Source: Trichoplax adhaerens (lineage: Eukaryota; Animalia; Placozoa). From it: 64,000 nucleotides of DNA. Every line of letters begins with the position of its first letter. Within the stretch, counting starts at the first letter, position 1. The position numbers were made by a program, and so were the translations under genes. Location: contig NW_002060943.1 in assembly GCF_000150275.1 (NCBI RefSeq), forward strand, positions 10,262,209 through 10,326,208, written 5' to 3'. The notes under the pieces were generated by a model, which saw nothing but the letters and a program-made list of their open reading frames with translations, ran no database searches and was not told where the DNA came from. Positions 4,574 through 64,000 of the stretch are shown here, piece by piece.

Positions 4574-9982
<5,409 letters not shown>

Positions 9983-10051: not shown

Positions 10052-10560
10052 TAGTACTATACTGTCTCGTATAGCAGTGTCGCACGATGATCATCTACTG
10101 TACCACGCTATACCAGTTTTACCGGTGATAGATTCTAGAGTTTCAAAGTCAGTATACTGTAGTAAAAAAGAAAAGAAAAACCGTTTCGACTAGTCAAGAT
10201 TTACAGTACAGTACTGTACAGTACAATGCAAACTGACAGTTCCGTACTTTCGTACTGTACTCAGTGTACTGTACTGTACAGTATAGACTGTATAGTACTG
10301 TATGTGCACATTTTAAAAATAAAATCAAAAAATTGTACTGTACCCACCAGACCTACAGTACTGTACTGTACAGATGTAGAGATAAAAAAGTAAAAAGAAA
10401 CGGAGAACGAAATTCTTATTACAGCACAGTGTACAGTACGTTGTACTGTACTGTACAGTGTACAGTATTTGACTGATTCCGAATCATCATCACTAGTGCA
10501 AACTCCCGTCGCTTTGCTGTACTGTACAGTAGTAGGAGTTCTTATACAGTACAGTATAGT
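10052..10560. promoter_or_regulatory. TACAG/CTGTA pentamer array upstream of DDX5
   Basis: Dense TACAGTACTGTA-type repeats with internal A-rich tracts (10144-10160, 10315-10332), starting about 70 bp upstream of the DDX5 ATG. Confidence 0.7.
10492..10519 (-). mobile_element. Truncated copy of the Helitron-like 3' terminus
   Basis: Exact 28-bp reverse complement of 30023-30050 (CAGCAAAGCGACGGGAGTTTGCACTAGT). Confidence 0.55.
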
Positions 10561-11501
10561 AACTGATGTTAAATTGATTTAGTTATAACGCTTGCGATTA
10601 ATACCCTGAAGATATTCACTTATAGATGATACCATAAATAATTCTATGAATGGACATACTGTAGTCTAATTAATCATCTAAAATCATGAAGTACATGTTT
10701 ACGATTATGAATATCTCTATATTAATTTATCTATTCAATATGAACTGAATTTCACAATCTTATGATGACTCATTCAGGATAGCTGCTGCCGAAAGGTATT
10801 TTAAGCTCGGCAGATAGCTGAATAAAATGAGAATTCTCTAGTTTGTTCAGCGTTGAAGCAAAGGCGCCTAAATTCTTGTCATATAGTTAACTATCTGACA
10901 GGGACACTGAATCCCGGAGACTTTAGTAATTTAGAGATTAGTTGTACGTTATCTTTGTCACGAAGTTGGTTTGTGGCAGTTTTAACACTAAAGTGCAATT
11001 ATAATTATAGTTGTTCCATACTACAATGGTAGATGACCCGGTCGCTATGCTCAGATCACTGTTCCTAATCTAGTCTCTTTATTGGTATAGTGTATACTGT
11101 ACACTTATAATATATAATTATACACTCCGATAGTAATGTTGTAGAATTCAAATTGCTAGATTGTTGTAAGGCATGCATTGCTGTACGCACAATATAACTA
11201 TATGGCAGTAAAATGTAACCAAAGTGCCATATCTGCTCTCATCATTACATTCGAGCATGATCAACGCGTAAACAAGAAATTAAACACCATAATACTGTAA
11301 TCGTTTTGAGCATAACTGATGACAAACAGTTAATGTACAGTACAATGTACATTATTCTTTAATATACGTATATATATATATATATATTGTGTTTGTACAT
11401 TTATAGTACATATACAATTGTTTCTATAGTATAATATTATGAGATACAATATACAGTTTCTATTAACATTCAAATACCTAACAGCGCATACGAATATCAT
11501 A

Positions 11502-14500
11502 TCAACTAATAATGTCAGTATTATAACTCGAAAAGTCCCCAAGATCTGTCACATAGATTTGCCAAGGAATTTCGTAAGATTTTTCTCCATTGCCTTGCGC
11601 AAGTTCCTCAATCATAATATCCAGTTCTTCATCCGACATTATAGCGATAAGATCGCCTTCATAATCAATATAATTAAGCGTAATTTCGAATTTACCGATA
11701 CGCTGGCTAGAAAGTACAGAGGGCAAAATATAGATTCCGTCAGGAAAATTGATATGAACACGTACATCAGCTGTTGAAAATTTTACTGCACTTCAATAGT
11801 ACTGATCAATTAGATACTCGCACACTATGTGTCGTAGTGATACAAAGGTTCTATCGGCAAAGGCTTACACAATCGTACAATACAATCATATCCGACGTCC
11901 AATACAATCGTACGATTTTTAAAATCACAAATTTCTCTACATATTACGTACAAATACGAATAAGTATCGCAAAATAGAGTATGCAAAATTTAAAGAGCTG
12001 TGCATACTACTGCCTTTGTGCACCGTTCATTTGGGATTAGTACAAATAAAGGATGTTTCAATCTTACCTTATTACAAAGTTTAGATTAATGATAACATTA
12101 GTGTAAATATCTACAGGTGTTTGGTGATCTTAAATATTTAAGCTTTCAACGGGTATAGATAGTAATTTATTTTAACTGTCAGTATAGACAAATGATTACT
12201 TTAATGCCATCCTACCTAATTAAGAAAAATAGGTCTTCGAATTTTGGTTTATAAAAAAACTCCGAATTAATTTCAATTTCATTCACGCAACCGTTGTAGT
12301 GGTAATTAATAACCCTTACAAAATCTTCATAACTATAATCGATTTCTTCCTGCCAAATAAAAATGGCGTATGAGCGCAAATTAGTGAAAATGTCTACGGC
12401 TTATATTTTATCACATAAAACAAGGTGCGCTACGGATGATAACGCGCGCTGTAGAATTAAAATGTATGCCGATATTCAGTAACTGAAGAAGTCTTGCAAA
12501 CAATTTGCATGTCAATACTGTAATCCTAAATTCTAACTCAACCCTGATATGGCTGTACTAAACTTACTTCAGAATCTGAGTCGCGTTTAGCATTGGTTGA
12601 AATTAATTTAAGTAAAGATTCTGTATGTACACCAATAGTCGGTTCTGATACTCTTCTTCTCGAAGCAGCCGTTGTTGCCCTAAGAATAATAATGAAGAAC
12701 TTTATGTGCCGATGATCAAAAATAGTGCAAGGAATCTGCAGAACTACGATATTTCATAGGCAGTCTTAAATATTATCATTGCTATCATAGTCTGGCTAAC
12801 TTACTCAGGTTTCCTGCGAGCTAACTTAGGACTACTACCAGCTTGATTCCTTAAAGCAAAATGTTCAGTAAGGCTGTGAGAGAATTGTTTATGTAAATCA
12901 TAGTCTTCCTTATTTTGTCGCAGAAATGACTGGATCAAGTCGCACTGTGATATTTTGCGATGCAGACTTAGTAACTCCCTTACGTAGCGATCTAAAAGAG
13001 GTAATCTCCTTTCAGCAACTTCGCGTTTAGCGCTCCTACCAAATATTATTTTACCTTAAACGAAATTGCGTAAACAAAACGAACTATTAAGATGACTTTA
13101 AAAATCTATTCCATACATTTCCTCAGTACTCCTTTCGAAGTTCCATTTTTAGTTTTGAATTAGTTCATGTACTATAAAAACTGGAACTAGAGGCTAGTGT
13201 TGCAACAGAAAGTAATGTAGTACAGCGCATAACTGCATCAAGTCAATTGACTATTAAGATCTGTGCAATAACAATCATTGAATTGCAAATTTGCAATGTA
13301 GATATGAACTACTGTATTGCACTACTAGTTATCACTTACTAATGTACCTAAAGACATATATTCACTAAGTACTGTGCAATATATACTGCAATGAATTGGT
13401 ATAACTTTAAATCTTACTGTACTGAGCTAGAGTGAATACTGAATTTGTTGGCTAGAAGAGATAGAGATAGAACTTAGAAATAGATTCGCGTGTTATACTA
13501 CGAGTATTTTCTTATTTTCAGACTAGCTTATCATGAGCCTACAATTTTTATAAACTGTAGTAAAGAAAACTTTTATCTCAATTCAGCTTAACTAACTTTA
13601 TTGTGAGTTGTAGCAGTAAAGCAGAATAAGATATAGTCGACCTTATTACACTTACTCATTTATATCATCTTACAATGATAGATTTAGCTATTAATTTTGA
13701 AATTATGCGGCGACATACTAGTGTACGGTATGCGTATGATGAAGTTCCTACCTGGCACAGTAGGTAGTATTCGATCTTGTGGATTGACCTTACCAGCCTC
13801 TAATGGAAATCGGCGTTCCAAATGTAGTAAGAGGCCATTAAATTGGCGAAATCTGCGATATATGACATGGGTTTCGCCAGAATGTAGTATTACTTTAATT
13901 GAATACACCTAAAATGCAAGACAATATTATTAATTAATGAAAGTTAGTACTGGTGTTAGCGTATGCTAGCTATTTATACAATTATATCCCATCTAAATGC
14001 AATATAATAAAGGAAAGATAGTTCCTGATCAAGGAGAGAGCTACTATAAGGATTTTAGCATAGGTTTACGTAGAAACAGGTAACGATGAAGTAAGATTGC
14101 TAGAACGAATACAGTTTGATTAACTGTAGAGGCTAGTGAAGGAGAGTCTACAAAACTTGAAATGTTAATGCTCCCGCTAACCCTATGACCAAGCTCTTTC
14201 ATGAACTGTACAGTACTGTACGTACACGTATATTTATTTTCCAGTATTTAATACCCAGACTATTAAAGAAAGTTGATTAACTGACTTCATGTTACATATA
14301 CAGTATGTAACATAATCAAAATCCTTTTAAATTATAATTATTCCTTGAAACATCAAATCTTTACTCGAGTAGAGTCACCAAATCAGATCGACAGGATTAA
14401 ACAACGTAAATAGCAGGGATTAAATAGTACAGTATACGTCAATTAATAATAATGATAATAATATAATTTAATAATTGTTACATTAAAACTTACGTAATAT

Positions 14501-14571
14501 TTCGTATTCTCCAGCTGAACTTTATGGCAATCTAAAATCGTAGCGTCAATAGCTAATTCAGATTGAGACAT
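11502..14571 (-). CDS. p40phox/NCF4-like NADPH oxidase regulator: PX domain plus C-terminal PB1 (OPCA) domain, no SH3; 6 exons
   Basis: MSQSELAIDATILD..YY|VYSIKV..IYRRFRQF..FPLEAGKVNPQDRILPTVP|GKIIFGRSAKREVAERRLPLLDRY..ISQCDLIQSFL (PX). The last exon LNYIDYEGDLIAIMSDEELDIM..PWQIYVTDLGDFSSYNT resembles the p40phox PB1 (LNYRDAEGDL..PWKLHIT..YNT). Confidence 0.8.
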
Positions 14572-14712
14572 GATTTCCGGTTATAGAATTAGAGAAGTTG
14601 CTCTTAATTTCACTTTTCACAATTAGTTATACTGTACTCTTGGTCATATTTCTCCATTAAAACATGGCTAAAATTTAAGAAACTTATTTAGGGACAACTT
14701 TTTGAATGCTGC

Positions 14713-15012
14713 CTGTACAGTACTCAGTGTACTGTAGAGTACATGTACAGTACAGTAGTATCAGCGCACTGTACAGTACAGTATGTACAGTACTGTACTA
14801 TAGGGACAGTACAGCGCCAAAAAAAGAAAAAGGAAAAGAAAATAAACACCGGCACAGTACTGTACTTAGCACGGTAGGGTATACAGTACAGTACTGTACA
14901 GTACACCGTAAACTCTTTAAGTTCCAACAAATCACTTGCACTGCACTGTACTGTATGTACTGTACAGTATGGCTGTACTACCAGCGTACTGTACATACTG
15001 TATAGTACAGTA
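14713..15012. promoter_or_regulatory. TACAG/CTGTA array in the bidirectional promoter between the NCF4-like gene and PHAF1
   Basis: Pentamer arrays flank a central A-rich tract (14819-14846). The divergent ATGs are at 14571 and 15129. Confidence 0.72.
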
Positions 15013-15128
15013 TTGAATGAATTAATTTGGCGAAGTGTTCTGGTATTTTATCCAAAATTTTGAAAACTAGTTGAGAAAAACAAAATCTTAATTATTCTCG
15101 CTGTACTGTAGTTACCTTTAAGGAAAAT

Positions 15129-20561
<5,433 letters not shown>

Positions 20562-23500: not shown

Positions 23501-23730
23501 GATCAAACATCAAGAACATTTATTCCTTTTAATCATATCATTCTAACAGGACGTATAATTAATATTTTATCAGTAACTAGTGTACCCATTACTGATCGAT
23601 TGATAAAGCGGTGAAACAAATTGATATAGAATGAATCCATTAATGACAAACTATAAGATGTCTTGGTCTAATTAATGAATATGTTACATAGTTAAGATAT
23701 CCATTTTGTACAGAAAGAATGTATATTGCT

Positions 23731-24723
23731 CTATACCTTTTGAAGATCGCACCTTCTAATTTCTTTTCGACGAAAGCAAAATCGTCTAGTCATGGCAGTT
23801 CGAATATCGACAGTAAGTAATCCGTAAATGAAAGGACAAATTGATAAATTTGTAAAAATGAGATAAACTGAGATTAATGAGGCTGCATTTAAAAATTTTC
23901 CTAATGCATCTGAAATCTTGTTATCATTACTGATTAAAACTAGAGACAAAGTATGGAAAATTACCCATGAAATTATGTATATAGTCATTGTAATACCGTG
24001 AATTAAACTTGTGCATATGTGATTATTTTCACGATTTTTTACACTAAAATTCAATGACAATGCCGTATTTTTCAAGCGTCGACGCTGCTTATATGCTGTA
24101 GCAAAGATTGATGTGTAAAGGAAGATAATAATAATGCAGCTTAATGCAAAATTAATAGCGACAACAAAAATAGAATAAATCCTTTCATGTTGAATATATC
24201 TAACAATCAGAGCTACCTGATTGCAGACTGTACTATCCGAAGTTTCAGTAATATTACGCCATGCGACACTAGGTAAGAAACCGATGATAAACGGTTGTAA
24301 CCAAATATAACAAAACATAGTAATAGTTACTTTCTTGGTCAAAATGTAATGATAAGTTAATGGATACATGACGATTGTGAAGCGGCAAATTCCAATCGCT
24401 AAAACGTGCAATACACTAGATGAGCTCAGAAAAATAGAAATGCTGTATGATAAATTACAAAAAATAGTACCAAATGGCCAAAATGTTGAAATACCACTCA
24501 CAACTAATGGTAGCATTTGTAGTAGTGCCAATAGTAAACTTGAAAATGCAAAACTGGCTAAAAATGAATTGTCAATCGTTCGTAATTTGCGTTGCGATAT
24601 AATAGTAATAAATAGGCTTGCATTAGCAAGTAGGCAAACAACAAGTAAAATACCTAAGGAAATAATCTTAGGTAAGACTTCTCCATTTAATTCGAACATC
24701 CTTTCATTGCTGTCAGTGGCCAT
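23731..24723 (-). CDS. Intronless rhodopsin-class (class A) GPCR, orphan, amine-receptor-like
   Basis: About 330 aa with seven hydrophobic segments. TM1 LANASL, ICL1 KLRTIDN, ECL1 WPFGTIFC, TM3 end ICRFTIVMYPLTY, TM4 W..P, TM7 CPFIY. First ATG at 24723. Confidence 0.9.
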   Translation of the reverse strand: MATDSNERMFELNGEVLPKIISLGILLVVCLLANASLFITIISQRKLRTIDNSFLASFAFSSLLLALLQMLPLVVSGISTFWPFGTIFCNLSYSISIFLSSSSVLHVLAIGICRFTIVMYPLTYHYILTKKVTITMFCYIWLQPFIIGFLPSVAWRNITETSDSTVCNQVALIVRYIQHERIYSIFVVAINFALSCIIIIFLYTSIFATAYKQRRRLKNTALSLNFSVKNRENNHICTSLIHGITMTIYIISWVIFHTLSLVLISNDNKISDALGKFLNAASLISVYLIFTNLSICPFIYGLLTVDIRTAMTRRFCFRRKEIRRCDLQKV

Positions 24724-27700
24724 GATCAATTCGGTCTTCCCCAGAAGATAATGATAATCAAGTTCTGCTTATATCTTGCTAATATATAGTTAAAATATTA
24801 TTGGAAGAACCAAGTCAAATTGTCGCTTAACTTTATAGTCATGAAGCAAATCAATTAATATGTAATTTTTTTATTATTAATTGATTGATTGAAATATTTC
24901 TATAGGGTATGAGATCCTTTCTTTTGCTTTTAAATCACATAATATCTACGAAATAAGCTTAAGTAATAGATACTATCTTATATATAACAAGAAAGCTGGC
25001 ATAATTTAAAACGAATATTCAAATTTTCTGTACTGTATACTAGTACATCAAAATTAAACAATTATATAAAATTCTCTGTTGCTTCATTCATTTTATACTT
25101 ACAATCAAAGACAGTGCAGTTAATATTACAACAGAACTTCTTTTATCGCATTAAGAATTCAAATAAGCTAATGCTACTGACGAAGCGTAACCTTTCTAAA
25201 AAACAATGAAATGTCAATCAATTTCTAGCTTAAATGCTTTTATTTATTAATACGGTTATAATGTTATCGTTATATTATCCCTGCTATTTTAAATTAATTA
25301 ACACGGAGTAGATATTAATATTATTTAAATGATTAAAATAATAAACTTGAAATTGCTTGCTTTTTATTATTAATATAAGCTAAATCAACTTGATATATTG
25401 GCTTTTGCAATATCAAATAATGTAGTCGTACGGTGGCTACATTATATTGATTCCCTTAAACTAATTGTTGACCTACTACAATGGATAGATTGGATAACAA
25501 TACTACACGTACTTTGTAATATTTATTTATGCTACTTTACTGAAGACAGTAACCAGAGTTGATTCGCAAATATTACTAACTTTTATTATCTAATTTAATA
25601 ATATCTAAATGAAATATATATGGAAGCAATTGTTGTATATTACATTTTCATTCCTCTAATATTTATATAGAATACTACAGGTATTAAATTTATTTTTACC
25701 TAGTGCAACGTATTTATTGTGATTAATTTACAGTTATCAGCAATTTAGGAAAGCACACATAAGAAACGAGTACTGCAAGTTACTTCATAGTAGTTTTCAT
25801 ATATTTCATTAATTATTATAGTAAGGTTTAATGCAAAAGTTAATGTTGTTTATTTCATACTGCAATCCTTTAGATATTTTTATTCGTTTATTTTATACAT
25901 ACAAGTAGCCTTAGATACATAAAATTAAATGTATGCAATTTTCTTTAATAATCTATTATCGCAATTAACAGTTTATTAACTCTTAGTAGTATTGATTCTC
26001 TTAATTAATCATTCGCAGTCATAAGTATACGTATAGGAGAAATTAACTAGTACCTATTATTGCCGTAGGTACAACACGTACTGCTGTATTACAAGTATTA
26101 CCGAACTTCTTATCTCATGCATCTTCATTATTATTATCCTGCTGTAATGCCTAAAAATAATGAGGGTTAAGGTTTTCTTATTATATTACGCTACTAATAA
26201 TGAAAGATAAAACGGAAATTAATGTCACAAAAAGTAATATTTTATATTACAGTTGATAAATGACATGAACTCTACAAAATTCCAAATTACAGAGCAAGTA
26301 TCATGTTATTTAAGGATATCTTATCAATTTATAAAGAGAATAAAGGTTACATCCAAAGTAGCTCGATCACCAATTCATTCTGATTTAGTATTTTAAAGTA
26401 TTGTATTGTTGGAATATTGAATAAGTTTTCTAGTTTAAAGCATAGCTTATAGTTTTATTAACAAATTCTGCAACATTATATTTATCACAAGTAAAATATT
26501 TCTGTTTTTGATTATTTGCTACGCCAATAACATTTAATTAGTTTGTATTGCTTTATATTTACGTTTAAATAACTGTCCTGAAACATATTTATCAATTCAA
26601 AATTAAAATCTTCCATTTGATTAAAATATAATTAAACTACCCAATCAATATAGTAACTAAAACATAGTTTCTCACAGTTATAACAACAGACAGATGCATA
26701 AATCATAATAGAAAGTTTTTTATTCGAATTTAAAATCGAAATTAAAAAAATTTAGTTATAATACTTTCTTTTCATCAAATATGATTCTACGAGACCTTTT
26801 GTAACAAATTTAAGCTTTTCATTACTTATATTTGTTATTTTATGATTGTATAACTTTAAATAGAAATTATCTGCACTTTCAATAGGATTTTCCTATTGCT
26901 TGAATGGGTTAATCGTTAATATTGCTAATATTGCCACTTAACATTAATCAGAAGCTTATCTTGAATCTTAAAGAATCCTATGGATTTTCCTCGAGTAAAT
27001 TACATTTATAGCTAAAATATTGTGATTTTAGTAAGTTACTGTGCAAGACAGAAATGGCTTTTTGATCATTTGTATCGATTCAATGCTTAACTTAATCTAA
27101 TATTTCTCTAGCTTTTTACGTATGCTGATATACACACCAGTAAATTGATATGCGTAAATTAGTCGTACGCGTATGAAAATCTAATGTTCAATTAAGATCA
27201 GTTTTATTTTACTCTCTTACTTAATTAGGGTTATAGAATAATTTTTGAATAATAATAAAAGAAAATTTGTTCAATTATTAATTCATTCGCTCTATAACAG
27301 ATTTTTGTAGACAATAATAAATATATCTGTCGCTGTATAGGTGCATACTCATCGAAAAGTCTTCATCGGCAGATGTCATAGTACAATAAAATATTCAATT
27401 GGTAATGTCAAACAACTTTGGACGGAATTATAATGAGTTCCTTGTCAACTAAGTTCCTTTCATTTAGTTTATTAAAATCGTTTATACTTAGTTTATTTTG
27501 AATAGCCATTGATCATTGTAAGTACCTAGAGAAGAATACAAAAATATTAATCAGTAAAATTATGGTACTATTTTGTGATAGAATTCTCAAAAACTTTTTA
27601 TCTCGCATTTTTTCAGTTAAAACCATATTTAATTAATGTGATGTCATATTTGACAGGCGCTAGAATATCCGTGTAATATAATTAATAAAATTAATTAGTT

Positions 27701-29460: not shown

Positions 29461-29751
29461 TGTCACAACCCTCACTTGTGGCAAAGGAAAGTAAAGAACT
29501 CTAGTGTAGTTACTTAAAACTTGGGCTATTTCTCCCAGTACTTTCAGTTTCTATGAGAGAAGTATTTGAGAACTCGATTTCTCGGCTGATCTCCACAGAC
29601 AACTGACTAATTATTACACTATTCTTCACGATATGAGTCTTGCCGTTTCTTGAGCAATTACTTACTTTATTCTACAAACACATGCGCTTAAATAGGTTTC
29701 TACAGTGAATCCCAATATTAACGAGTGAGAATTCATGCTTTACAAGTTACA
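29461..29751 (-). mobile_element. Possible solo LTR
   Basis: TG...CA ends with an imperfect terminal inverted repeat (TGTCAC/GTTACA). On the minus strand a TATA-like CTATTTAAG precedes AATAAA (29666-29671). No target-site duplication was found. Confidence 0.3.
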
Positions 29752-30018
29752 TTAATTAGTATAATACCATTACTAAATATACATGTCGATATTCTCAGAC
29801 TTAGATAGCTACAAGCTATCAGGTGTTAAGACGCTTAACCTTCGTCCATATACAGCTCAATTTTTAGAGATTAACACACCTTATAAACCTACAGTAAATT
29901 AACTGCTAACAACTTCTATTTTTATCTCATTTCTACCATCCTATTATCAGCTACAAGCGCATTAAAACATAGCACATAACCGGTAATACTATCTGTTAAA
30001 TGAGCACATTATCGTAAA

Positions 30019-30050
30019 CCGTCAGCAAAGCGACGGGAGTTTGCACTAGT
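30019..30050 (+). mobile_element. Helitron-like 3' terminus
   Basis: GC-rich hairpin CCGTC-A-GC-AAA-GC-GACGG (30019-30036), then CTAG|T at 30046-30050. A second copy lies at 10492-10519. Confidence 0.6.
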
Positions 30051-30745
30051 CTCACCCACCCTCCCTTGAAACGAGCAGCGCGGGGGTATTTATACTACTG
30101 TTAAATGACTCTGATTATGGGTTCATTTCAATAGGTCAGTATAAGATTCTTACAGTACTTTTAACCTAAAGATTTCTTCATGTAAAACGAATAGCTCTAA
30201 GGTAGTAATTTCTGCAGAGTACTGATTATTAAAATAGTATTCGTTATATCGCTAAGGGTGGCCACTGGGCCTTTAAATTTTGATTTCATGTAATATTCTG
30301 ATGAAAATTGAATAAACATAGAATCTTTATAGAGTTTTCTATACAGCCATTTTCATTGTTACATTTTCTTATAACGGTTGTTATCGACAGAGCAAGCTTT
30401 GCTTGCATACGACAGCGATCCTTAGACACATTATAATGATTGGTATAGAATTGACCACAGTACGAAGGACATTGTACCGCACTGTAGATATCTTACAGTA
30501 CCTGCTAATCTTAACTTGGTATGTCCATCACCATACATTAGTTATCATAATGTGCTCTGGACCATTAACTAATCTTAATATAGCATAGTATATTACTGTT
30601 ACTAGGATATATATAATATCGAATGATAATACTATCTGTTAATTTTATTAACAAATTGACCATAAACGTATATTTGACAGTTTCGCTCACCAACCTTAAC
30701 ATAGCATTAATACCGTATATAGTAACCATCCTTATTCAGTAAACA

Positions 30746-31105
30746 TACTAATACGAAAGTTACTTAACGAAATTTGAATTGGTATAGAAATGAATGATCT
30801 GTAGGGTTTATGTGAATATTATTGAGAAGGTAGAAGTGATTGATACACATCAGTAGGTACTATTAGTTCTATTGCTCTCTTACAATTCGTAGTGTTATCC
30901 TACTGTAGTTCCCCTGTCCCGATTACTAATATGAAAGTTACTTAACGAAATTTGAATTGGTATAGAAATGAATGATCTCTAGGATTTATGTAAATATTAT
31001 TGAGAAGGTAGAAGTGATTGATACACATCAGTAGGTACTATTAGTTCTATTGCTCTCTTGCAATTCGTAGTGTTATCCTACTGTAGTTCCCCTGTCCCAA
31101 TTACT
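30746..31105. repeat. Tandem duplication, about 178-bp unit x2, next to the assembly gap
   Basis: 30746-30923 is nearly identical to 30924-31101. 31121-31142 repeats about 30715-30736 immediately before the N run. Confidence 0.85.
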
Positions 31106-31142
31106 TTTGATTTCTATACTGTATATAGTAAACATCCTTATT

Positions 31143-31192
31143 NNNNNNNNNNNNNNNNNNNNNNNNNNNNNNNNNNNNNNNNNNNNNNNNNN
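31143..31192. other. Assembly gap (50 N)
   Basis: Run of n. Confidence 1.
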
Positions 31193-37867: not shown

Positions 37868-37985
37868 TCCTGACTATTAACAATGACCAAGTACATTAAA
37901 TTTTAAATTTTAAATTATAAATTATAATTAATATACGAGTAGGTGTGTTTTTTTATTATTTAATGGATTTTTTATAAAAGCTATC

Positions 37986-38218
37986 TACAGTACTGTATTG
38001 GAAAGTACAGTAAAATACTGTACTGTACAACCTGTATACAGTAAGAGTTCTGTAGAGTTCTTACAGTACATACTGTAAGCACGGTACAATACTATACACT
38101 GTAAGCTACAGTCTTTTGGCCAACCTGTACTGTAGCGTTTCCGTTATTTACTACACTACTGTACTGTACTGTACTGTACTGTACTGTATGCTGTCACTGT
38201 ACTGTGCTGTACTGTAGG
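37986..38218. promoter_or_regulatory. TACAG/CTGTA array in the bidirectional promoter between the F-box gene and EDEM2
   Basis: Includes perfect (TACTG)6 at 38157-38186. The divergent ATGs are at 37867 and 38612. Confidence 0.72.
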
Positions 38219-38611
38219 CATGCTTCCAACTACACCAGTTTTACTAGTATGACGAATTTGGTCTTAGCAGCAATTATAAGAAGCATCAGAACAATTTTAT
38301 TCGCTTTTCCTCTCGCAGTTGTAGTCAAAGTTAAGGGGACTACTGACTAGTGTATAATACTATAAATATCAAAGCTAAAGGTGTAAGGCTGTACCATCCT
38401 GAAGATATTCACTAGTAATATCGAGGAAGAAATTCTTTCTCGAAAAATGTGCATTTCTAGTTGGATGATACGGTTATAGTAGTAGTTAAGTACCATAGTT
38501 GTCCACATAAGTTGGTGTATTCTACATTCCGGAGCTGTCTAAATTTGAAAGATATCATCAATAGTTATTATAACATATATCGTATAGATCTCTAGGGCTG
38601 TAGATAGTAAT

Positions 38612-46489: not shown

Positions 46490-46588
46490 TTCTTGTTCAG
46501 AGCATCCAGTTATGCTACGATCTTCCTATTTTACTTTTACTGCGGTCAGGGACTAACGGTCTCGCAGCACGTAACAATATAATATAAT

Positions 46589-46772
46589 ATACAGTAATAC
46601 AGTATACTGTATATACGGTAATATACAGTACAGTATGTACTGTATTCTGTGCTGGAATACTACTGTACTGTACAGTAGGCGCCCATGAACAAAACTACTG
46701 TAGTATAAGTACAGTACAGTACTGTACTGTACTGTTGTCTACTACCGTACAGTACAATGTGTACTGTACAAT
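46589..46772. promoter_or_regulatory. TACAG/CTGTA array upstream of IMPA
   Basis: Pentamer array starting about 100 bp upstream of the ATG at 46489. Confidence 0.68.
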
Positions 46773-47042
46773 GCGTATTACGATGTGACTTGTTTTTAAA
46801 ATGGTTGGAGCTACAGTACATGTAAGAGCGACTGATAGTTTGTATTATTCAATGCTGCGATAAAAAGTAATCAAAATATCAAGAGCCAATTGCTCAAGGT
46901 TGTGCTGATCTGTCTGCATGGAATTGGAGCCAAATTGAAAGTCCATTTTTTCACAATTGAAAGACATAATTTAAGGCAACACTGTAGCTGAACATCTTTC
47001 AACCATTTTAGAAGGCTTGCCACGCCCCTGTAATGGTAGTCT

Positions 47043-47243
47043 TTACAGTACTGTACAGTACAGTAAAAGCTTTGGTACAGTACAGAGTACTGTACTGCTA
47101 ACTACTGTGCTGTACAGTATACTGTACTGTAATAAGAACTACTGTACTGTAGTAAGATCTATACGCAGTAAGTACTGTATAGTGTACTGTACTGTATAGC
47201 ACATTAAGTCAAGTGTACCGTATATTACCCTGTAATACTGTAC
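47043..47243. promoter_or_regulatory. TACAG/CTGTA array upstream of the coiled-coil gene
   Basis: Second, separate array in the same intergenic region, followed by CCAAT boxes at 47247-47251 and AGCCAATCA at 47291-47299. Confidence 0.65.
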
Positions 47244-47607
47244 GTTCCAATCAAAAGTATTCATTTCAGTCAATTGCTTATATTACAATGAGCCAATCAA
47301 TTACGTTATCCTATAATTTTAAATTTTATAAACTAAATTTTATTTTATTGTAATTGTACAGTTCTTTATTTACTTATTTACGGTAAACTACCGATAAAGG
47401 ATAAACGGATCCGACGGATGAGTATCTAGAAGCAGCAAGAATCAATTGATCTGCGGAAAGAATGAATATTTTTATTTATTTATAACTAAAAGTATCTGGT
47501 TAGAATTGGTTGTTGGTGTCTCTAGACCTTAAGAAAACGAGCATTTCAAGTTAATCACTGCAGCTGAATATATATGTGCACTATTATCTACGATTATAGT
47601 AAATATA

Positions 47608-49511
47608 ATGGAAGCATCCTTGCCTGCTTTGCACTCTTGTGTTCAGGTTGATAATTATGTATATAATTAAGTAGAATTCATTGTATTTGTTAATACAGTA
47701 CTTAAATTTCTGAATATTATCAAGAGGTTCTAATGCAATTGACCACAGTGGCAGTTTTAGTGTTCAATTAACGTAATATTTACAAACCGAATGCAGTCAC
47801 ATACGTACGTATACACTGTCGAGAATGCTCCATAACTGCAATGAATATAGTTATTTAGCGTAACGACTGGGCATTATTACGAAATATAAAACTCAATTAT
47901 AAATTCTATAAATCACAAACTCATATACATTATTGCATATTTGCATGCGAGTTGTAAATAAATTCGTGAATCAAAGAGATGAATAGCTCAAGATTTCTGG
48001 ATTTAATGTACTGCACAGATTAACCCTAAATTGATATATCACCTTAATACTTTTTAGCTATCCGCTGAAAATGAACTACTTCGAAAAAAATACAAGAAAC
48101 TACGCAGTAAATATCAACAATTAGTAAAGGAAATAGGTGAATTAAAAGATAAACTGAAGGAACCATCAGATGTCGGCAAGAGTTGTAAAGTAGTAAAACG
48201 AAGGTATGAATAGACCAAACTGATCATTTAATATAAATATTAAATATACATAGAAAAGTAAACATCCTACCTAGGCTTGACTTGACATCAACTTTAACTA
48301 CAAATATTTCATGAACTTTATAGTGTTCATACACAAACAATACCCTCGGTAGGAAAATCTAATTCTACACAAAAGTTTATTAACAAAATGACAAAACCGA
48401 CGCCAGTTATCGATAGTCAAACTGAAAGCATAAATCGGTAATGTAATTAAAATGCTTTTAAATTTTATCAAGCTTCCTAATTAGATAATCTACTATTTCA
48501 ACTAACGTTCTAATCAATTAAATAGATTGCTGGCAGTTCATAACAACCTAATGAAAAAGTACCAACGAGAACTAAAAAATAGCACAAATCAAATCGAGCA
48601 AATAACATCGTTAACGGTAAGTCAATCAATTAAAGGAGATTGATTAAGTTAACGTTCAACTCAAGACAGTGTAAATACTTATCAGGACAGATGCATTGTA
48701 CTATACTCTTGGTAACTTCATAATATTTATTTAATAAGACAGTTTGAGAAACAAGAAGTCCAACAACAGCTTAATCTATGCCAGGAAAAAATTAAGGCTT
48801 TGGAAAAGGAACGGACTGTTCGAGAGGAACAGTTGGCCAAGGCTGGACTTGTCAGTGCTAAAGATTTTGAGACTAGAGCCGGTAATATTTAGCGCTATAA
48901 GCTTTTTCTGTAATCATAAAAACAATTATTTTAATCCTCATTTGATTCACGAATGAAAATATTGGCTATCATACGTACTTTTGATACTTTAGCGCTAACT
49001 TCGAAATTATCAATTATAACAAAAGAAAATACCAAGCTGTCTGAAGAAAATCATAAATTAAGAAGTAAATCTTATACCTTATGTGCAATGTTGTTAAAAT
49101 TTTAATAGCTTCAATCCTCTTGATAAGTATAATTTCTTATTTATATTTATTTTTATGTAGCTGAACTAGAAGGAATAGACAAGGTATCTAAATACATTAG
49201 AATTGATTTGGTATCGTAACACTAATTAAAATATAACAAATGTAGGCAAAGGATATCGTCTAAGTAGCAGTTACTTTTCATTTCCTTTATCTATTGCTGC
49301 GCACACTAGATTTCATAATGGATTATATCGTAGAATGTGATAATTTTTTAATTTATCTTAGGAATTTTTTGATGAAATAGAAGATCTTAAATTTGCGTTA
49401 CAACAGGCTTCTAGCCATAATATTGAGTACGAAAAGACTCTAAGGAAGCTATGCTCGCAGTTTGGCCTTCCTTACCCTTTAGGTGCATTAAAGAATAATA
49501 ATAACAATTAG
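47608..49511 (+). CDS. Small (about 255 aa) coiled-coil protein with a CEP290-like C-terminal motif; 8 exons
   Basis: Phase-consistent GT-AG splicing: MEASLPALHSCVQ|LSAENELLRKKYKKL...|...KENTKLSEENHKLR|TELEGIDK|EFFDEIEDLKFALQQ..EYEKTLRKLCSQFG. The tail resembles the CEP290 C-terminus (ELENFDPSFFEEIEDLKY..KKLSEQLG). Stop at 49509-49511. Confidence 0.75.
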
Positions 49512-50852
49512 GCCAAAGTGTTTGTTATGATTGTCTTACAGTTAGGAGCTATATTGGACTGGATCATTTAGGAAAGGATATCTAATGTAATTTTCATCCT
49601 CCTCAATAATAGAAATATAGAGTATGATATTTTACTAAGCTTCGATAAACTCAACATATAAAAATTTTGCATTGAGCTATGCATAGCCATAAAGTATACA
49701 AGCGAAACTGGAGAATTGATATATCTAGATATAATAACATCAAATTAGTTGTTATTATTTATTATTATAATTGTGTATACTGTATCATATTATTACATAG
49801 TATAATAATGTACTATACATTTAAAAATGTCATTTCGTAAGTACATACCTTCATATATGCTGTACAATACATTCTAAGGTATTTTATGATTTTAAAATTA
49901 AATTTGATAGTTGCTAAGGTAGATTAATAGTAAGTTGTCAATGATGATAAATTCTGTTCTGCAAGATATATTAAACTAATGTAAAATTTTACCGGTAAAC
50001 TGGCCCGTAAACATAACGTATGCTTGCACGACATTTGATTCTTTGCCACTTGTTTATTACCAAAAAGTGGACTGCCTAAGCTTGCAATAAAACATAAATG
50101 TTACATATTGGCATAGGACAGTCCAGTTGCACAGTACAATTTGTATTGCCTTGTGTTCTCAGATATTCGTATAGTATTTCTTCTCTATGGTAATGACAAA
50201 GCTCTTCTCTTACCCCTGGTTTGACTAGGTGACAGAACCAGTATACTGTTTCTATGTGTTTTAGAACATTGACACTGCAATTGCTGACCCATTGGAGTCG
50301 CCTATCACTTCTCAGTCAGTAAGCTTTGCTGCTGTCTGAAGATAATAGTTGCTTTCTAAACAAATTGTGGACGGATAAAGTCAAAATTCTGTAAGAGTAT
50401 AGCAGCTACGCAATCACAGGCGTCTATCACTACAGCTATGATTCGCTCTTCTGCTACTGATCAATAGATTAATTAACAGAATCTTTAATAAATTTTATTT
50501 TATTCAGTCACGGTCTTTAACCTGAAAAGTACCTTTGAGTACAATTTAAATTTAAATTTTTAACGCGAACCAGGTACACCACTGTCACAGCATAGACTAC
50601 TACTAGTATAGCAGAAAAAGAGCTGGACGCACAAGTATGACTAGCTCTGCAAAGCTTGAACCAGTTTATATACCCGTATATACACGTATGCGACTTTCTG
50701 TCACACGGACACGATGCAAAGAGTCTCTCACGTGTAAAATCTCAACGCAAGGACTTTCTAATTTAATTTAATTTAATTTAAAACATAAAATTTTAAATTT
50801 ATGAATTTCTCCTGTAGGAGTCCCTGGTGAAAGTGCATATTGCCCGCGGAGA

Positions 50853-51043
50853 TACAGTACTGTACTGTATGTTAAGGTTATAGGCGTATTCGCTGCATCA
50901 CTACGGTGTACAGTACAGTACAGTAATAGTACAGTAGCAGTGTACTGTACTGTACTGTACAGTACGTACAGTACAGTACACTGGACTATACAATACAGTA
51001 CAGTACAGTACAGTATGCAGTTACGTCACGTACAGTGTACTGT
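50853..51043. promoter_or_regulatory. TACAG/CTGTA array upstream of CTNNBL1
   Basis: Dense pentamer array ending about 80 bp before the ATG at 51123. Contains a CRE-like TTACGTCA at 51021-51028. Confidence 0.72.
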
Positions 51044-51122
51044 AAACCTGGTATAAATCAACCGTATTTCCATTGTTCATAGATTCCACGAACAGACTCG
51101 CGCCCGGAGATAACTTACGAAA

Positions 51123-54100
51123 ATGGTTGATGTTGGCGAACTCCTACAATTAGCTGAAAAAGTGAGTATTACTGATATAACTTTTGACATTTTTTATAAA
51201 TACTTGTTCCCGTAGCACTCTTTATGAAATTAACTAAGAAATTGTACCAATTTGAGGATGATCGTCCTATGAAGCGAAGGCGTATAGATGGCAGTGATGA
51301 TCATAAAAGTTTAGGTGCTTCATCCAGTGGAAACAGCAGCTCCGCAGCTGCAGCTATAACTAGTAGCACAAAGTTGAGCAATGAAGAGCGTGATAAAATC
51401 TTAGCCATGCTAGATGATGAGCCAGAGGTAAATACGTTGATTGATTATTGAAGCAAATACATCAGTCATGTTTCGCCCTAAAATGTTGTTGTTAACTTAG
51501 TACGCTTACAATCTAGACGGTTTCGCGTATGTTCGCTTTTAAGAGGTATCATGCAGACCGTACTTTAGTTTACAGTATTCTGATTTACAAGTATTTGCAA
51601 ACAATACAGTCTGCGGTCAAAGCAGGGACAACTCGAGGGAAAAAAAATTATTATTTCCTTCGAGTTATCCCTCGTTAAAGTTATGCTACAATACTTAACA
51701 TTATTTGTGGCTTCATTTGAATAGACCTTATAGACACTCAGTCTGTCACCATGCTCTTACTGTTTACAAAGTTTCATTTTCAACTGTATATATGTCGTTT
51801 ACCGTATAGATAATCGGTCATTTTGCAAAATGACTGATGCAAAAGCAGGGTTTCTTCATCAAGTAGAGCACTGTACTTAAGTTCTTTTACGTTAATATGC
51901 GCTGCAAAGCACATTATACAAAGCTATTCACTACTATATAGTGTATCTGTCAATAAGAACAAACTATCATTACTGCCCTACTGATGTAACACATTCTATT
52001 ATCTGTACATTAAAAGTGTAAGTAGACTTAACAATATGTGATTATAATTAACTCATGCTGTCTAATTGTATTGACGTACGATATCAAAGACAGAATCATT
52101 AGATTCGCATAGCCTAAAGAAGTTGATACTAAGTTTCGAGAAGAAGGTATCAAAGAATCAAGAGATGAGAATTAAACATCCTGATGATCCAAAGAAGTAC
52201 GTTAGTAAAATTTTAATCTCTAACATACTATGCACCATAATCTATGTTAAAAGGATAAGATACGTATGTATACAACTAGTAAAAATATAATATGACGTGG
52301 TAGATAATTTATTTATATTGCTAATTATAATTAATAATTATGTAAGTTAAGTATAAATCACCATCTTCACATCTGATTGACCCTGGTATTACTACGGTAT
52401 ATAGCTATTTGTTAAACATAATAACTTACTTGTCAATGCATAGATTTATGGAATCTGAAATTGAATTGTATGAAGAAATTCAGAAATTGAATGTCATTGC
52501 TACTGCCCCGGAACTCTATCCACAATTGGTCGAGCTAAACACTATCAAATCCTTCGTTGATCTGCTGACTCACGATAATTCTGGTAGTTTTCACTTAATT
52601 ATAATTATAAATATTTATTTTATCACTTTAATAAGCTATGCAGTACTGCTAAAGAGATAGAACTATAAAGCTATATGGCCATTACGAATTTAGAGCATAA
52701 TGAGACATACTGCTTCTCATCATTGTTGTAGTTATTGGTTACTACTTACTTTATACCTACCCTTCTACTTCAGCTCTTGAAATATCGTAATTATGTCCGA
52801 TTTTCTATTATACAGATATATCCATTGCAATTGTGGATTTACTACAAGAGATGACTGATGTTGATAGTTTACACGAAAGTCATGAGGGAGCAGTGGCATT
52901 AATAGACGTTCTGGTTAGATAAACCGTTTTCATTCATTAACATAATAATTAACTTTTATGCTACTGTCCGTGATATCCGTGACATAAGTAAAATTTGTTT
53001 TTCCCTTATATTTGCGTATCGTGATAAAATGATTTAGGTGGAGAATCAAATTGTCACTTTATTAATTCAAAACATTGAACGACTAAACGATTCTATAAGA
53101 GAAGAAGCTGATGGAGTTCATAATACGCTAGGTTTGACTTTTGACTAACAATAAATTACGTAATTGGACGCTTTTTACGTATTAAATTATTAAAGTGATT
53201 GCTACTAACTTCATAAAATTATCGTTCTTGAAATTATAAACAAAGACACTCATTAATGACTTTTATTTATACTGTTCTAGCTATTATTGAAAATCTAACA
53301 GAGTTTAAACCTGAGTTATCTACCGAAGCAGCGAATCAAGGACTTATGCAGTGGATTTTGAGGAGTTTAGTGGTAAGCAAATACTTCTTTTCGGATGAGA
53401 GATTGATTAGATTACAAACAGTCGTATTGTCATACATTGGAACGGTGTTATTATTTTAGGCGAAACGCAACACCTATGATGCAAATAAAGCCTATTCTTG
53501 TGAAATACTTGCAGTCCTACTACAAGGCCACGAAGGTATACTTTAAACGTAAAGGGTGAGTATGATATTCTTCACGATTAGCTCATGCTTGCCACAAAAT
53601 TTTTATAGGGAATCGCACATTGTTAGGCGAATTAGAGGGTATCGACACACTACTTCAAATATTGTCTGTAAGTTTCGCTCAAATTTCGTTCTATATTACT
53701 TATACGAGTACAACTATAACGGGCGTTTATGTAGTATCCTATCATGTCTGTAATATTTTCAAGGTATATCATAAGCGAGACCCGACCACCGCAGACGAAA
53801 TTGAAATGCTGGAAAATTTGTTCGATTGCCTGTGTTCATCATTAATGCAGTGTCCTGGAAATTGCGAAAGATTTTTACGTGGTGAGGGTCTACAGTTAAT
53901 GATATTGATGCTAAGGTAGGTGTATTGAATTATTATTAAATATTATTATCAACTGACATCCGTTTACGTGATGCTCTTTCTAATGATTCCTACCATTTTA
54001 GATCGAAAAAGCTTAGTAGCAAAGGAGCAATAAAAACTTTAACTTATGTTTTATCAAACTATAATGGACCAGATTGTGCTGTAAAGTTTATAGAACTATT

Positions 54101-55295
54101 TGGTTTACGTAGTCTTTTTCCTTTATTTATGAAAGTATGACGCCGTGTTGCATCTCCTTTCGAAATTTACAATAAAGTAGTAGCTACAAATTTCAATGTT
54201 ATGAGTTTGCTTTATTATTATTTAGACACCAAAAATGTTTAAAAAACTGACCAATGAAAGTGAGCATATAGGTTAGAATTTATCAACATTACATCAATCA
54301 CTTTAAACTTTTATTCTGAAACTTTTACAAATAAAGCGAGAAAAATTCTTCTTATGATGAATTGCTATGTTTTGTTGAAATCTAGAACACATTTGCTCCA
54401 TTATGGTCCATTTATTTCGGCATAGTTCAGGACAATCCAAGTCTAGATTAGCGAATAAATTTATCGAAAACGATTTCGAGAAGGTAAATTAATCATTACT
54501 AGAATTAATACTTAGTGTTCATATCGACGGATTATATTTAGAGAAACATTATTTTATTTTAGGTGGATCGTCTTATGGAGCTACATTTTGAGTATATGCA
54601 TCGTGTTCAAGAATGTGATAATAAAATCGAAGAAGAAAAACGAGTAAGTCAGTATCCATAAAAATTTACAAAGTACTGTCATATCTTCGACTTAGGATTT
54701 TCTAAAATGTTTGCACTCTGGTGCTAATGCACTAATTTTACGTAATTTAAGGTGATAAATTGATTAATGATAATGCTGCTGACTTACTAGTGATTTCGGG
54801 CAAACACTGTTTCTCGTAGGAATTAGCTGATGATGGTGAAGAGATTGACGAAAGTTTAGAAGAGGAATTCTATCTACGTCGATTGGATGCAGGTCTTTTT
54901 AGCCTGCATCTTATTGATACGATCATGTTGGAGGCTTCAGCTGCTGGTGGTCCAAATGTATGTCTAATGCACCTGCACAAACTTTACGTTTTTATACACT
55001 AATTCGCTACTCTTTATCCAGGTAAGGCATCGTATTCAAACGTTATTAAATCAGCATGGAGGTTCCATGAAGGCTGTAAAGGATATCATGCGAGGTATAG
55101 TACATCTTTCGATACCGTAGCAGGTCTATTTTACCACTTATTTTAATTAAGGGCAAAAATGTATCTAACTTGACGCACGAATTTAATCTTTTATTTTAAT
55201 GTATAGAATATGCAAGTCAAATCGGTGACGCAAATAGTAAAGATAGCAAAGATGCAGAACAACGTCGCATTTTGTCGTTAATCGATAGATTTTAA
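51123..55295 (+). CDS. CTNNBL1: Beta-catenin-like protein 1 (Prp19/NineTeen complex); multi-exon
   Basis: MVDVGELL; LKKLILSFEKKVSKNQEMRIKHPDDPKK|FMESEIEL; LLTHDNS|DISIAIVDLLQEMTD; EEADGVHNTL; RDPTTADEIEMLENLFDCLCS; FLRGEGLQLMILMLR; EK|VDRLMELH; FYLRRLDAGLFSL. Stop at 55293-55295. Confidence 0.95.
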
Positions 55296-55741
55296 GTTCA
55301 TAAAACTATCAATAACTCGTTATTACAGGATATACCGCATAGATTTATTAAGTCATAACGTTATTGCTTGCAATTATACATGCATTAACGCCTGCGGTGG
55401 TCTATAGCACAATGTTATATATTAAACTTATTAATTCCTAAAGTTATTGTAAATTCAGTAGACTGTGTTCAATGTGATCGATTACTTAGACACTTTAAAC
55501 ATATCGAGACCTTTATTATTTTAATCATGATCAAGACATAAGGCACAGCTTCGGCTGCATTAGGCCTTGCTCATTAAACTTTAGATTCTTTGATTCGCAT
55601 AAGTCTATTGACACTGCGATATATTTTACAATAAATTATTCTTCGGTAACCCTTAGCACTAGATTAATGGCAGGTTATGCTTAATTACCATGAACTTAGA
55701 TGTTACAGTAAAAGTAGTATTATGCTAATAACAAAATCGAA

Positions 55742-63827
<8,086 letters not shown>

Positions 63828-63876
63828 GTTACTGAGTATTCCGGCGCCAATTTTAAAAGGCATGCGCAGGGCTTAA

Positions 63877-63990
63877 TGTACCTTGTACAATGTACTGTAC
63901 TGTACAGTATACAGTACAGTAGTAATGGTACGGTACTGTACGTAAAGTGGTAAAGTCATACAGTACAGTACAGTACTGAGCACACAGCAC
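63877..63990. promoter_or_regulatory. TACAG/CTGTA array upstream of SPT16
   Basis: Pentamer array starting about 50 bp upstream of the ATG at 63827, running to the window end. Confidence 0.7.
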
Positions 63991-64000
63991 AGTGTGGACC

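Follow-up and report, generated by a model that had tools for sequence, protein, structure and literature searches.

Promoter-proximal clusters of the known ACAGT repeat and their internal grammar in Trichoplax adhaerens

The analysed stretch of 64,000 nucleotides from Trichoplax adhaerens (the window) contains seven dense arrays of the pentamers TACAG and CTGTA, which were delimited by counting hits per 200-bp bin. At least nine hits fall into the bins 10201-10600, 14601-15000, 38001-38200, 46601-46800, 47001-47200, 50801-51000 and 63801-64000 and into no others, the average over all bins of the window being 1.25, and all seven positions given by the first-pass annotation are thereby confirmed. 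None of 50 shuffled versions of the window formed an array, and TACWG occurs 372 times where 126 copies are expected. The genes around the arrays were identified by searching their exons individually, and the features are as follows.

5275-5646, minus strand: Helicase_C exon of a DDX5-like gene
8753..9560, no strand: weaker scattered TACWG chains in the 5'-proximal body of the DDX5-like gene, probably its first intron
10052..10560, no strand: TACWG array preceding the minus-strand DDX5-like gene, whose ATG is at about 9982; dense part 10155-10554, with three A-rich tracts inside
14713..15012, no strand: array in the bidirectional promoter of a PX/PB1 gene (minus strand, start about 14540) and PHAF1 (plus strand, ATG 15129); single A-rich tract at 14817-14850
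23731..24729, minus strand: intronless rhodopsin-type GPCR, the sole gene start without an array (negative case)
37986..38218, no strand: array between an F-box/WD40 gene (minus strand, candidate ATG 37867) and a GH47 mannosidase-like gene (plus strand, ATG about 38220-38249); six CTG units in it, at 38157-38188, form the longest pure run
46589..46772, no strand: left half of a bipartite array that precedes a gene on the minus strand with candidate ATG 46489
47043..47243, no strand: right half of the same array; 55-100 bp downstream of it a spliced transcript starts on the plus strand
47298-50077, plus strand: this transcript, with six GT..AG introns and one non-canonical joint from 49064 to 49360
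50853..51043, no strand: array in the bidirectional promoter of CTNNBL1 (plus strand; TATAAA about 51053, 5' end of the RNA contig about 51082, ATG 51123, intron 51162-51256) and a minus-strand transcript (intron 50356-50532)
63877..63990, no strand: array reaching the window edge and preceding a gene on the minus strand (donor 63758, ATG 63827 or 63863)

Two details of the earlier description have to be revised. The array 10052-10560 serves the DDX5-like gene only; as the PX/PB1 gene lies on the minus strand, its promoter array is that at 14713-15012, used in common with PHAF1. Likewise, an A-rich tract is not a general feature of the arrays and is present in only two of the seven. No RNA family emerged from an Rfam scan of the window and of two loci with arrays. 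A gap in the assembly (31143-31192) is located 6.8 kb from the closest array inside a 178-bp tandem repeat, both of its flanks are collinear in a gap-free contig of Trichoplax sp. H2, and it is without effect on the finding of the arrays.

The arrays are closely associated with gene starts. The zones of 500 bp upstream of 11 inferred starts make up 6% of the window and accommodate 56 of its 67 GTACWGTAC 9-mers, corresponding to a 78-fold ratio of density. At least five 9-mers precede ten of the 11 starts, and none precedes that of the GPCR. The proposed promoter association therefore stands in the window. Typically, the arrays sit about 20-220 bp upstream of an ATG or transcription start and often between divergent gene pairs. 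According to assembled RNA contigs, which do not fix true 5' ends, transcripts at two arrays have their 5' ends 40-100 bp downstream, and transcription at a third array is divergent; two ATGs lying between the arrays 46589-46772 and 47043-47243 had no RNA support in three of four runs. As had been suggested, the genes marked by the arrays at their 5' ends contain introns and look broadly expressed, and these ends are often bidirectional; the GPCR, a cell-type-specific gene, is skipped. Their described confinement to promoters is valid only in part: no array is present at the GPCR start or in the gene-poor stretch of 25-37 kb, but weaker TACWG clusters occur within 5'-proximal gene bodies at 8753-9560 (the DDX5-like gene), 14208 and 63419.

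Genome-wide counts on the assembly of 105.6 Mb (1,414 contigs) substantiate the abundance of the motif. GTACWGTAC occurs 48,360 times compared to about 875 times for its reversed control, GTACAGTAC and its complement 24,078 and 24,282 times, respectively (controls 464 and 411), and the 14-mer palindrome GTACAGTACTGTAC 3,495 times, its reversed control being absent and about 0.3 copies being expected by chance from base composition. Local statistics were obtained from a sample of 264 kb, which contains 18 arrays, two 100-kb blocks outside the window holding four and seven of them. Scaled up, this density gives an estimate of some 5,000 arrays, compared with about 11,500 genes, by which many promoters would be devoid of arrays, and the earlier statement that almost every promoter is marked was overstated for the genome as a whole.

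Each array is a cluster of 100-700 bp composed of many short TA(CWGTA)n chains that are mutually out of phase, a chain being equivalent to GTAC cores at a 5-bp spacing, with either A or T between them. A or T exceeds G or C at this fifth position by 13.9 to 1, G or C accounting for 7%. A second unit, TA-CAGTG-TA, is 71-fold enriched. Among the 32,173 two-unit chains in the genome (AA 9168, TT 9462, AT 7220 and TA 6323), 57.9% of neighbouring units share the same orientation and 42.1% are switched. A and T are thus used about equally and the orientation is close to memoryless, the ATA/ATT ratio being 0.65 compared to 0.67 predicted. A block-wise or palindrome-favouring orientation was considered and rejected, as the three-unit counts fit a first-order memoryless model; palindromes of the GTACAGTACTGTAC type, which the earlier description had stressed, are accordingly a by-product. 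All arrays are dense in inverted-repeat pairs (16-42 nt, 10-580 nt apart), and two of them fold as single strands better than any of 200 shuffles (z = -4.31 and -3.65). Self-complementarity as expected for cruciform-type DNA thus exceeds chance, for single strands only.

Ordinary (ACAGT)n repeats of other organisms, taken from 80 metagenome contigs as a control set, are built differently. In these repeats 95% of the neighbours share the same orientation (5% switches), in contrast to 58% in Trichoplax; 90% of the chains are kept in phase (205/4/14/2/4 modulo 5), whereas the Trichoplax phases are uniform (29/23/36/19/30); and interruptions are single substitutions, while one-mismatch units account for only 17% of the interruptions in Trichoplax. 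Shared by both are the 5-bp unit and a change of length in 5-bp steps. Compared with a slippage-type microsatellite, the Trichoplax arrays have neither homogeneous runs nor a kept phase and change their length by whole units. The view that they are not an ordinary microsatellite therefore holds with respect to grammar, given the 42% switches and the out-of-phase chains, but not with respect to length changes, which resemble those of microsatellites.

These length changes were visible in a comparison with the assembly of Trichoplax sp. H2, which is 99.2-99.7% identical at the locus and encodes a protein 100% identical to the GPCR. One array (14713..15012) was compared base by base within 20.8 kb of aligned sequence. 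The alignment has 16 gap openings with 56 gap bases in all; about five of the openings and 37 of the bases fall into this 300-bp array, which corresponds to an about 30-fold enrichment of indels between the lineages H1 and H2 over the nearly identical surroundings. The indels span 5, 5, 15, 5+2 and 5 bp, each copying a neighbouring unit, and in the one case seen TA-CAGTG-TA and CTG are a 2-bp slip apart. The comparison shows, for this array, a fast turnover in which 5-bp units are gained and lost in slippage-type events; this turnover argues against constraint on individual units. More distant placozoans were less informative: an exon of the PX gene and an array-derived reading frame gave no matches as queries, a CTNNBL exon retrieved fragments of 82-89% identity on contigs of 635 and 1,537 bp, which end short of any promoter, and GPCR orthologues of 72-73% identity lie on contigs of about 2 kb.

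That an ACAGT repeat occurs upstream of Trichoplax genes and might be a transcription-factor site is already known and not new here: Wang, Zhang, Meyer & Bao (2010, Biol Direct 5:18, PMC2871265) found (ACAGT)n to be the predominant microsatellite of Trichoplax and proposed this role. With moderate confidence, we interpret the arrays as these known promoter-proximal clusters, which would act as a cis-element of a constitutive promoter class and turn over by slippage. On the basis of their position, the arrays might serve a putative placozoan factor as a homotypic platform, made up of palindromic sites with a GTAC core, and/or constitute nucleosome-disfavouring DNA, by which such promoters would be held open and insulating. 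Open promoters are, however, also preferred targets of mutational processes, and the position of the arrays is therefore no proof of function.

One such process might be transposon excision. In this scenario the arrays would be neutral, functionless stacks of canonical footprints of Tc1-like (Sleeping Beauty-type) elements at open promoters, remodelled by slippage, with CAGTA or CTGTA added each time an element inserts at a TA and is excised again. TACAGTA and TACTGTA are exactly the canonical Sleeping Beauty footprint, in which repair of the central mismatch yields A or T (PMC6943129; bioRxiv 10.1101/659086), and the equal, memoryless use of A and T with only 7% G or C fits this origin. So do the chains being out of phase, unlike decayed microsatellites, the 2.2-fold enrichment of isolated heptamers outside the arrays, and a chain continuation of about 0.35, which is close to the share of CWG among TA-to-TA intervals in the arrays (32%), as if units were random at TA. 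However, a source element with TA-CAG termini was not found in the genome; the only Tc1-like reading frame, of the DDE_3 type, lacks clear inverted repeats (TIRs), an upstream array and, by sequence, a PDB relative. No match to the mariner transposase (PF01359) was obtained in a genome search run without a positive control, and Wang et al. reported only 11 Tc1/mariner fragments and no active element (PMC2871265). In addition, the non-canonical footprints TACATA, TACTA and TACGTA are not enriched in the arrays (1.0-1.1-fold), the 71-fold enriched TA-CAGTG-TA is no reported footprint, all H1/H2 indels are slippage-like, same-orientation neighbours amount to 58% rather than 50%, and tens of thousands of events on 300-bp targets would be required. 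The 7-bp identity to TAC(A/T)GTA, including the equal split at its centre, is a close likeness, but known footprints are single scars at former insertion sites and stacks of 10-40 at promoters are undescribed. Altogether we regard a purely neutral origin of this kind as rather unlikely. A variant in which trails of tens of thousands of footprints from a now lost Tc1-like element were amplified by slippage and possibly co-opted as the placozoan element for housekeeping promoters and insulation appears similarly doubtful; if true, transposon excision, and not insertion, would have written a class of promoters.

A transposon contribution of another kind was proposed by Kim et al. (2025, Nature 642:1097), who found Mutator annotations concentrated at housekeeping (GP1) promoters with their motif within the terminal inverted repeat (PMC12221973). 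The arrays would then be TIRs or remnants of Mutator-like (MITE-type) elements inserted into active promoters. Their inverted-repeat pairs would readily be called by a TIR finder, and the bipartite array carries at its edges (46597-47234) an inverted pair of 21 nt and 86% identity that includes ACGG. After masking of the repeats, however, the array regions have no unique flanking or internal sequence in common except for one 227-bp pair, so that they are not copies of one transposable element. Moreover, the edge motif GGTAATATACRGTAC is present in only eight copies in the genome, ACGGNACGG is absent from the window, and the units are arranged internally as in a simple repeat and not as in an element with defined ends. 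We therefore reject an origin from one element family and hold a Mutator-like source in general to be quite improbable; the published Mutator calls might rather reflect TIR finders reading the arrays. Similarly little weight is assigned to a purely structural element acting protein-free via cruciforms or nucleosome exclusion or positioning. It would be compatible with the density of inverted repeats in every array, with the single-strand folding of two arrays beyond all 200 shuffles (z = -4.3 and -3.7) and, from general knowledge of nucleosome positioning, with the occurrence of a TA step at each half helical turn (5 bp), which should cancel rotational preference. On the other hand, palindromic junctions are not favoured over direct ones (42% switches, memoryless orientation), the inverted arms are short and imperfect, and A-rich tracts, the classical nucleosome-excluding feature, occur in only two of seven arrays.

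The placozoan genome is compact and transposon-poor, and about a third of its promoters join 3D hubs. A simple repeat at thousands of constitutive promoters is an obvious candidate handle; (GTACW)n could serve as a defined probe for a factor, and the fast turnover supplies natural variants. Beyond the known association with genes, the present analysis adds the distinction from a slippage microsatellite, quantitative rules of the grammar, the hypermutability between H1 and H2 and the proposed origin from excision footprints.

The closest known system is the (ACAGT)n repeat of Wang et al., which is identical in sequence, as TACAG is a rotation of ACAGT and CTGTA its complement, and was described in the same genome at the same upstream position. 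High abundance of ACAGT/ACTGT, upstream location and the Trichoplax genome are all given here as well. In that study the first 1 kb upstream of genes accounted for 54% of the repeats and the first 5 kb for 85%, and the respective genes were enriched for translation and kinase functions (PMC2871265). Only perfect repeats above 12 bp were counted and classed as microsatellite; mixed orientation, out-of-phase chains, cluster size, bidirectional promoters and lineage turnover are absent from it. A search of the literature by raw sequence gave only primer and miR-101 matches. The same motif was recovered by the Chimaera Hi-C network (NAR 2026), which was trained on T. adhaerens Micro-C data and found a repeating ACAGT whose in-silico mutagenesis alters the predicted contact maps (PMC12817080). 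There it is linked to contact patterns at gene starts, in silico only and without position or grammar. Kim et al. reported that about one third of Trichoplax genes, mostly housekeeping ones, have accessible H3K4me3 promoters, which are joined in loop hubs and share a lineage-specific motif conserved in four placozoans (PMC12221973). This loop-anchor motif concerns the same gene class as the arrays and was published as a figure logo, not spelled out. The Chimaera paper distinguishes ACAGT from an ACGG motif assigned to a transposable element (PMC12817080), and as the motif of Kim et al. is there called ACGG-type and TE-borne, it may differ from the ACAGT repeat. ACGGT/ACCGT is a minor variant unit of the Trichoplax arrays, at 7% of the fifth positions. 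In vertebrates and Drosophila, CpG islands and the DRE, respectively, are signatures of housekeeping promoters. They resemble the arrays by functional analogy, each being a sequence class that marks constitutive and often bidirectional promoters. Unlike CpG islands, the arrays have neither CpG enrichment nor a relation to methylation and are instead made of a short palindromic unit in tandem.

The arrays, i.e. the clusters of TACAG/CTGTA units at 10052-10560, 14713-15012, 37986-38218, 46589-46772, 47043-47243, 50853-51043 and 63877-63990, are the only places of the window where 200-bp bins contain at least nine TACAG/CTGTA hits (mean 1.25 per bin), precisely as located in the first-pass annotation, and none arose in 50 shuffles (0/50). 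Genome-wide, the 14-mer palindrome GTACAGTACTGTAC occurs 3,495 times versus 0 for the reversed control, and the GTACWGTAC-type 9-mer GTACAGTAC (W, A or T) and its complement 24,078 and 24,282 times versus 464 and 411 for the controls. Numerous contigs of about 1 kb among the smallest unplaced ones (C7-C400) are densely filled with TACWG units. A 264-kb sample composed of the window and two other 100-kb blocks contains 18 array regions (7, 4 and 7, respectively) covering ca. 3% of the bases. Scaled by genome-wide pair counts, the genome harbours roughly 5,000 arrays versus ca. 11,500 genes; the statement that they mark almost every promoter is therefore true of the window but not of the genome. 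Since the assembly seems to break at the arrays, their number is underestimated by counts on placed scaffolds.

Gene starts in the window were derived from the annotation of Trichoplax sp. H2, Pfam hits on single exons, ATG-plus-donor scans and RNA contigs, the exons being searched unjoined.

Inferred gene starts in the window
9982, minus strand, DDX5-like gene
~14540, minus strand, PX/PB1 gene
15129, plus strand, PHAF1
24729, minus strand, GPCR
~37867, minus strand, F-box/WD40 gene
~38220, plus strand, GH47 gene
46489, minus strand, unnamed gene
47298 or before (TSS), plus strand, unnamed gene
~50838, minus strand, unnamed gene
51123, plus strand, CTNNBL1
63827, minus strand, unnamed gene

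Within 500 bp upstream of these 11 starts lie 56 of the 67 GTACWGTAC 9-mers of the window, corresponding to a 78-fold density ratio. At least five are found at 10 of the 11 starts and none in the 500 bp upstream of the GPCR start, which had already been described as array-free. According to the RNA contigs, a spliced plus-strand transcript (47298-50077) begins 55-100 bp past the array 47043-47243, and the first exon of CTNNBL1 (from ~51082) ca. 40 bp past the array 50853-51043 and ca. 25 bp past a TATAAA, these distances being approximate because contigs cannot fix true 5' ends. The same data reveal a CTNNBL1 intron (51162-51256) in agreement with the predicted donor and a minus-strand intron (50356-50532) pointing away from the array 50853-51043; the stretch between the arrays at 46.6 and 47.1 kb yielded no RNA contigs in three of four runs. 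The RNA contigs of three runs contain, between the exons at 49064 and 49360, 21 additional letters not found at the joint, which could represent a micro-exon of 21 nt or a discrepancy with the assembly. Weak TACWG clusters are also present in 5'-proximal introns. The A-rich tracts ascribed to several arrays exist in two of the seven but are absent from the others and thus not general. The p40phox-like PX/PB1 gene (11333-14571) resides on the minus strand, because the N-terminal (13687-13908) and C-terminal (12804-13055) parts of PX and the PB1 domain (11505-11792; Pfam) descend in coordinate, and the H2 annotation concurs; the strand implied by the earlier promoter assignment has to be reversed accordingly. 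The long plus-strand reading frame 11439-11777 has neither a Pfam hit nor a homologue. Outside the arrays, the most over-represented 7-mers (TACGCGT/ACGCGTA) belong to the palindrome TACGCGTA, e.g. at 8740-8752, and are observed 32 times versus 6.8 expected in the 264-kb sample (order-3 Markov model); TACGCGTA may be a second promoter motif.

The arrays read TA(CWGTA)n and hence display GTAC every 5 bp. Genome-wide in-phase neighbour pairs (AA 9,168, TT 9,462, AT 7,220 and TA 6,323) share their orientation in 57.9% and switch it in 42.1% of the cases. From the three-unit counts (AAT 1,523, ATT 1,532, ATA 991 and TAT 1,032) an ATA/ATT ratio of 0.65 is obtained, close to the 0.67 predicted by a first-order model, so that unit orientation has almost no memory and palindromes receive no preference. 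A third unit follows a pair with a probability of ca. 0.35, close to the 32% of TA-to-TA intervals in arrays that are CWG; chains are therefore no longer than expected of random placement. Adjacent chains lack a phase relation (mod 5 = 29/23/36/19/30). The fifth position is occupied by A (24,078) or T (24,282) and rarely by G (1,800) or C (1,690). The arrays show a 71-fold enrichment of a further unit, TA-CAGTG-TA or its complement. Single-strand folding of two arrays surpasses all shuffles (z = -4.3 and -3.7), but there is no excess of palindromic junctions. As a control served 80 metagenome contigs of other organisms containing the W-neutral pattern GTACWGTACWGTACWGTAC. There, neighbours share their orientation in 95%, chains are in phase in 90% and a one-mismatch unit follows 68% of the chain ends, as characteristic of ordinary microsatellites, whereas the Trichoplax arrays reach only 57.9% shared orientation and 17% one-mismatch continuation. 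Orientation, phase and interruption statistics thus give quantitative support to the earlier view that the arrays are no ordinary microsatellite. Since homogeneous (ACAGT)n of up to 19 units is common in the control contigs (GC 34-65%, organisms not identified), not the pentamer but only its mixed, clustered form is placozoan-specific.

The arrays also change rapidly. Between H1, the probable T. adhaerens lineage of the window, and H2, 20.8 kb align (NOWV01000004.1) with 99.2-99.7% identity, and the intronless GPCR (23731-24729, minus strand) shows 100% identity with 'Octopamine receptor beta-1R [Trichoplax sp. H2]', which places the genome in Trichoplax. The array 14713-15012 differs by indels of 5, 5, 15, 5+2 and 5 bp, its flanks (280 bp) by one substitution and one 1-bp indel. 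With 300 bp it takes ca. 5 of the 16 gap openings and 37 of the 56 gap bases across the 20.8 kb, a roughly 30-fold indel excess. Every array indel can be read as slippage, an adjacent unit of 5, 10 or 2 bp having been duplicated or lost, and no in-situ A/T flip was seen upon re-alignment of this array by eye. The array finding is unaffected by the N run 31143-31192, which sits within a 178-bp tandem repeat at a distance of 6.8 kb from the closest array. The flanks of the run are collinear and equally oriented in the gap-free H2 contig, which indicates a copy-number difference or assembly collapse rather than a misjoin; H1 29982-31192 (about 1.2 kb) corresponds to only 170 bp in H2, and the gap may hide further repeat copies.

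With respect to their origin, the arrays are not copies of one element, as a motif proposed for their termini has just 8 occurrences genome-wide and the 18 regions share no unique sequence apart from one 227-bp segment. This non-repeat segment, the sole shared flank, connects two regions 4 Mb apart (L005 ~1081-1296 and L012 ~6638-6858) with 76% identity and has no Rfam match. A 21-nt inverted pair of 86% complementarity containing ACGGTAATATAC flanks the bipartite array (46612-46632 and 47214-47234) and is probably a local feature, because its core has only 8 genome hits. The dense inverted repeats of the arrays would draw TIR-finding software. The array unit is identical to TACAGTA or TACTGTA, the canonical footprint left by Sleeping Beauty/Tc1-like excision, in which the central base stems from A-A mismatch repair (PMC6943129; bioRxiv 10.1101/659086). 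An origin from such footprints would account for the equal, memoryless A/T, the rarity of G/C at the fifth position, the random placement of units on TAs and the out-of-phase chains. We nevertheless consider it unlikely, since non-canonical footprints are not enriched in arrays, the recent H1/H2 changes resemble slippage, a PF01359 search (without positive control) found no mariner match and the single Tc1-like reading frame of the genome lacks clear TIRs. This frame, the only DDE_3 (Tc1/IS630-like) match (L021 895-1971, i.e. C1409 ~3537595-3538671), is uninterrupted and encodes 358 aa with HTH and DDE_3 domains. It is not preceded by an array, has no sequence relative in the PDB and may be a transposase that either was domesticated or stands alone. 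Concerning function, four points fit a candidate cis-element of constitutive promoters, bound by a putative factor and/or disfavouring nucleosomes: the site of the arrays directly upstream of TSSs, the class of their genes, published work on accessibility and 3D contacts, and GTAC cores that are strictly retained. Neutral arrays without function are kept as a live alternative, in line with their rapid turnover and with mutational processes drawn to open chromatin.

The arrays are real and striking, and their association with promoters has already been published. As rotating ACAGT gives TACAG, whose complement is CTGTA, the first-pass annotation rediscovered the repeat of Wang et al. 2010 (PMC2871265), who reported that pentanucleotides constitute 61.8% of the Trichoplax microsatellites and ACAGT 78% of these. 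They placed 54% of the ACAGT repeats at most 1 kb and 85% at most 5 kb upstream of genes, noted that translation and kinase functions are enriched among the associated genes, and considered ACAGT a possible transcription-factor site. A network trained on T. adhaerens Micro-C recovers 'repeating motifs ACGG and ACAGT' (2026, PMC12817080), of which ACGG is ascribed there to the transposable element described by Kim et al. The latter study (Kim et al. 2025, PMC12221973) described promoter hubs of ca. 3,000 housekeeping (GP1) genes and, inside 'Mutator' terminal inverted repeats, a loop-anchor motif that is conserved in four placozoans and published as a logo. To this knowledge, the present analysis makes incremental additions, namely the internal grammar of the arrays, their hypermutability and the identity of their unit with the excision footprint, and these make it easier to put ideas on origin and function to the test.
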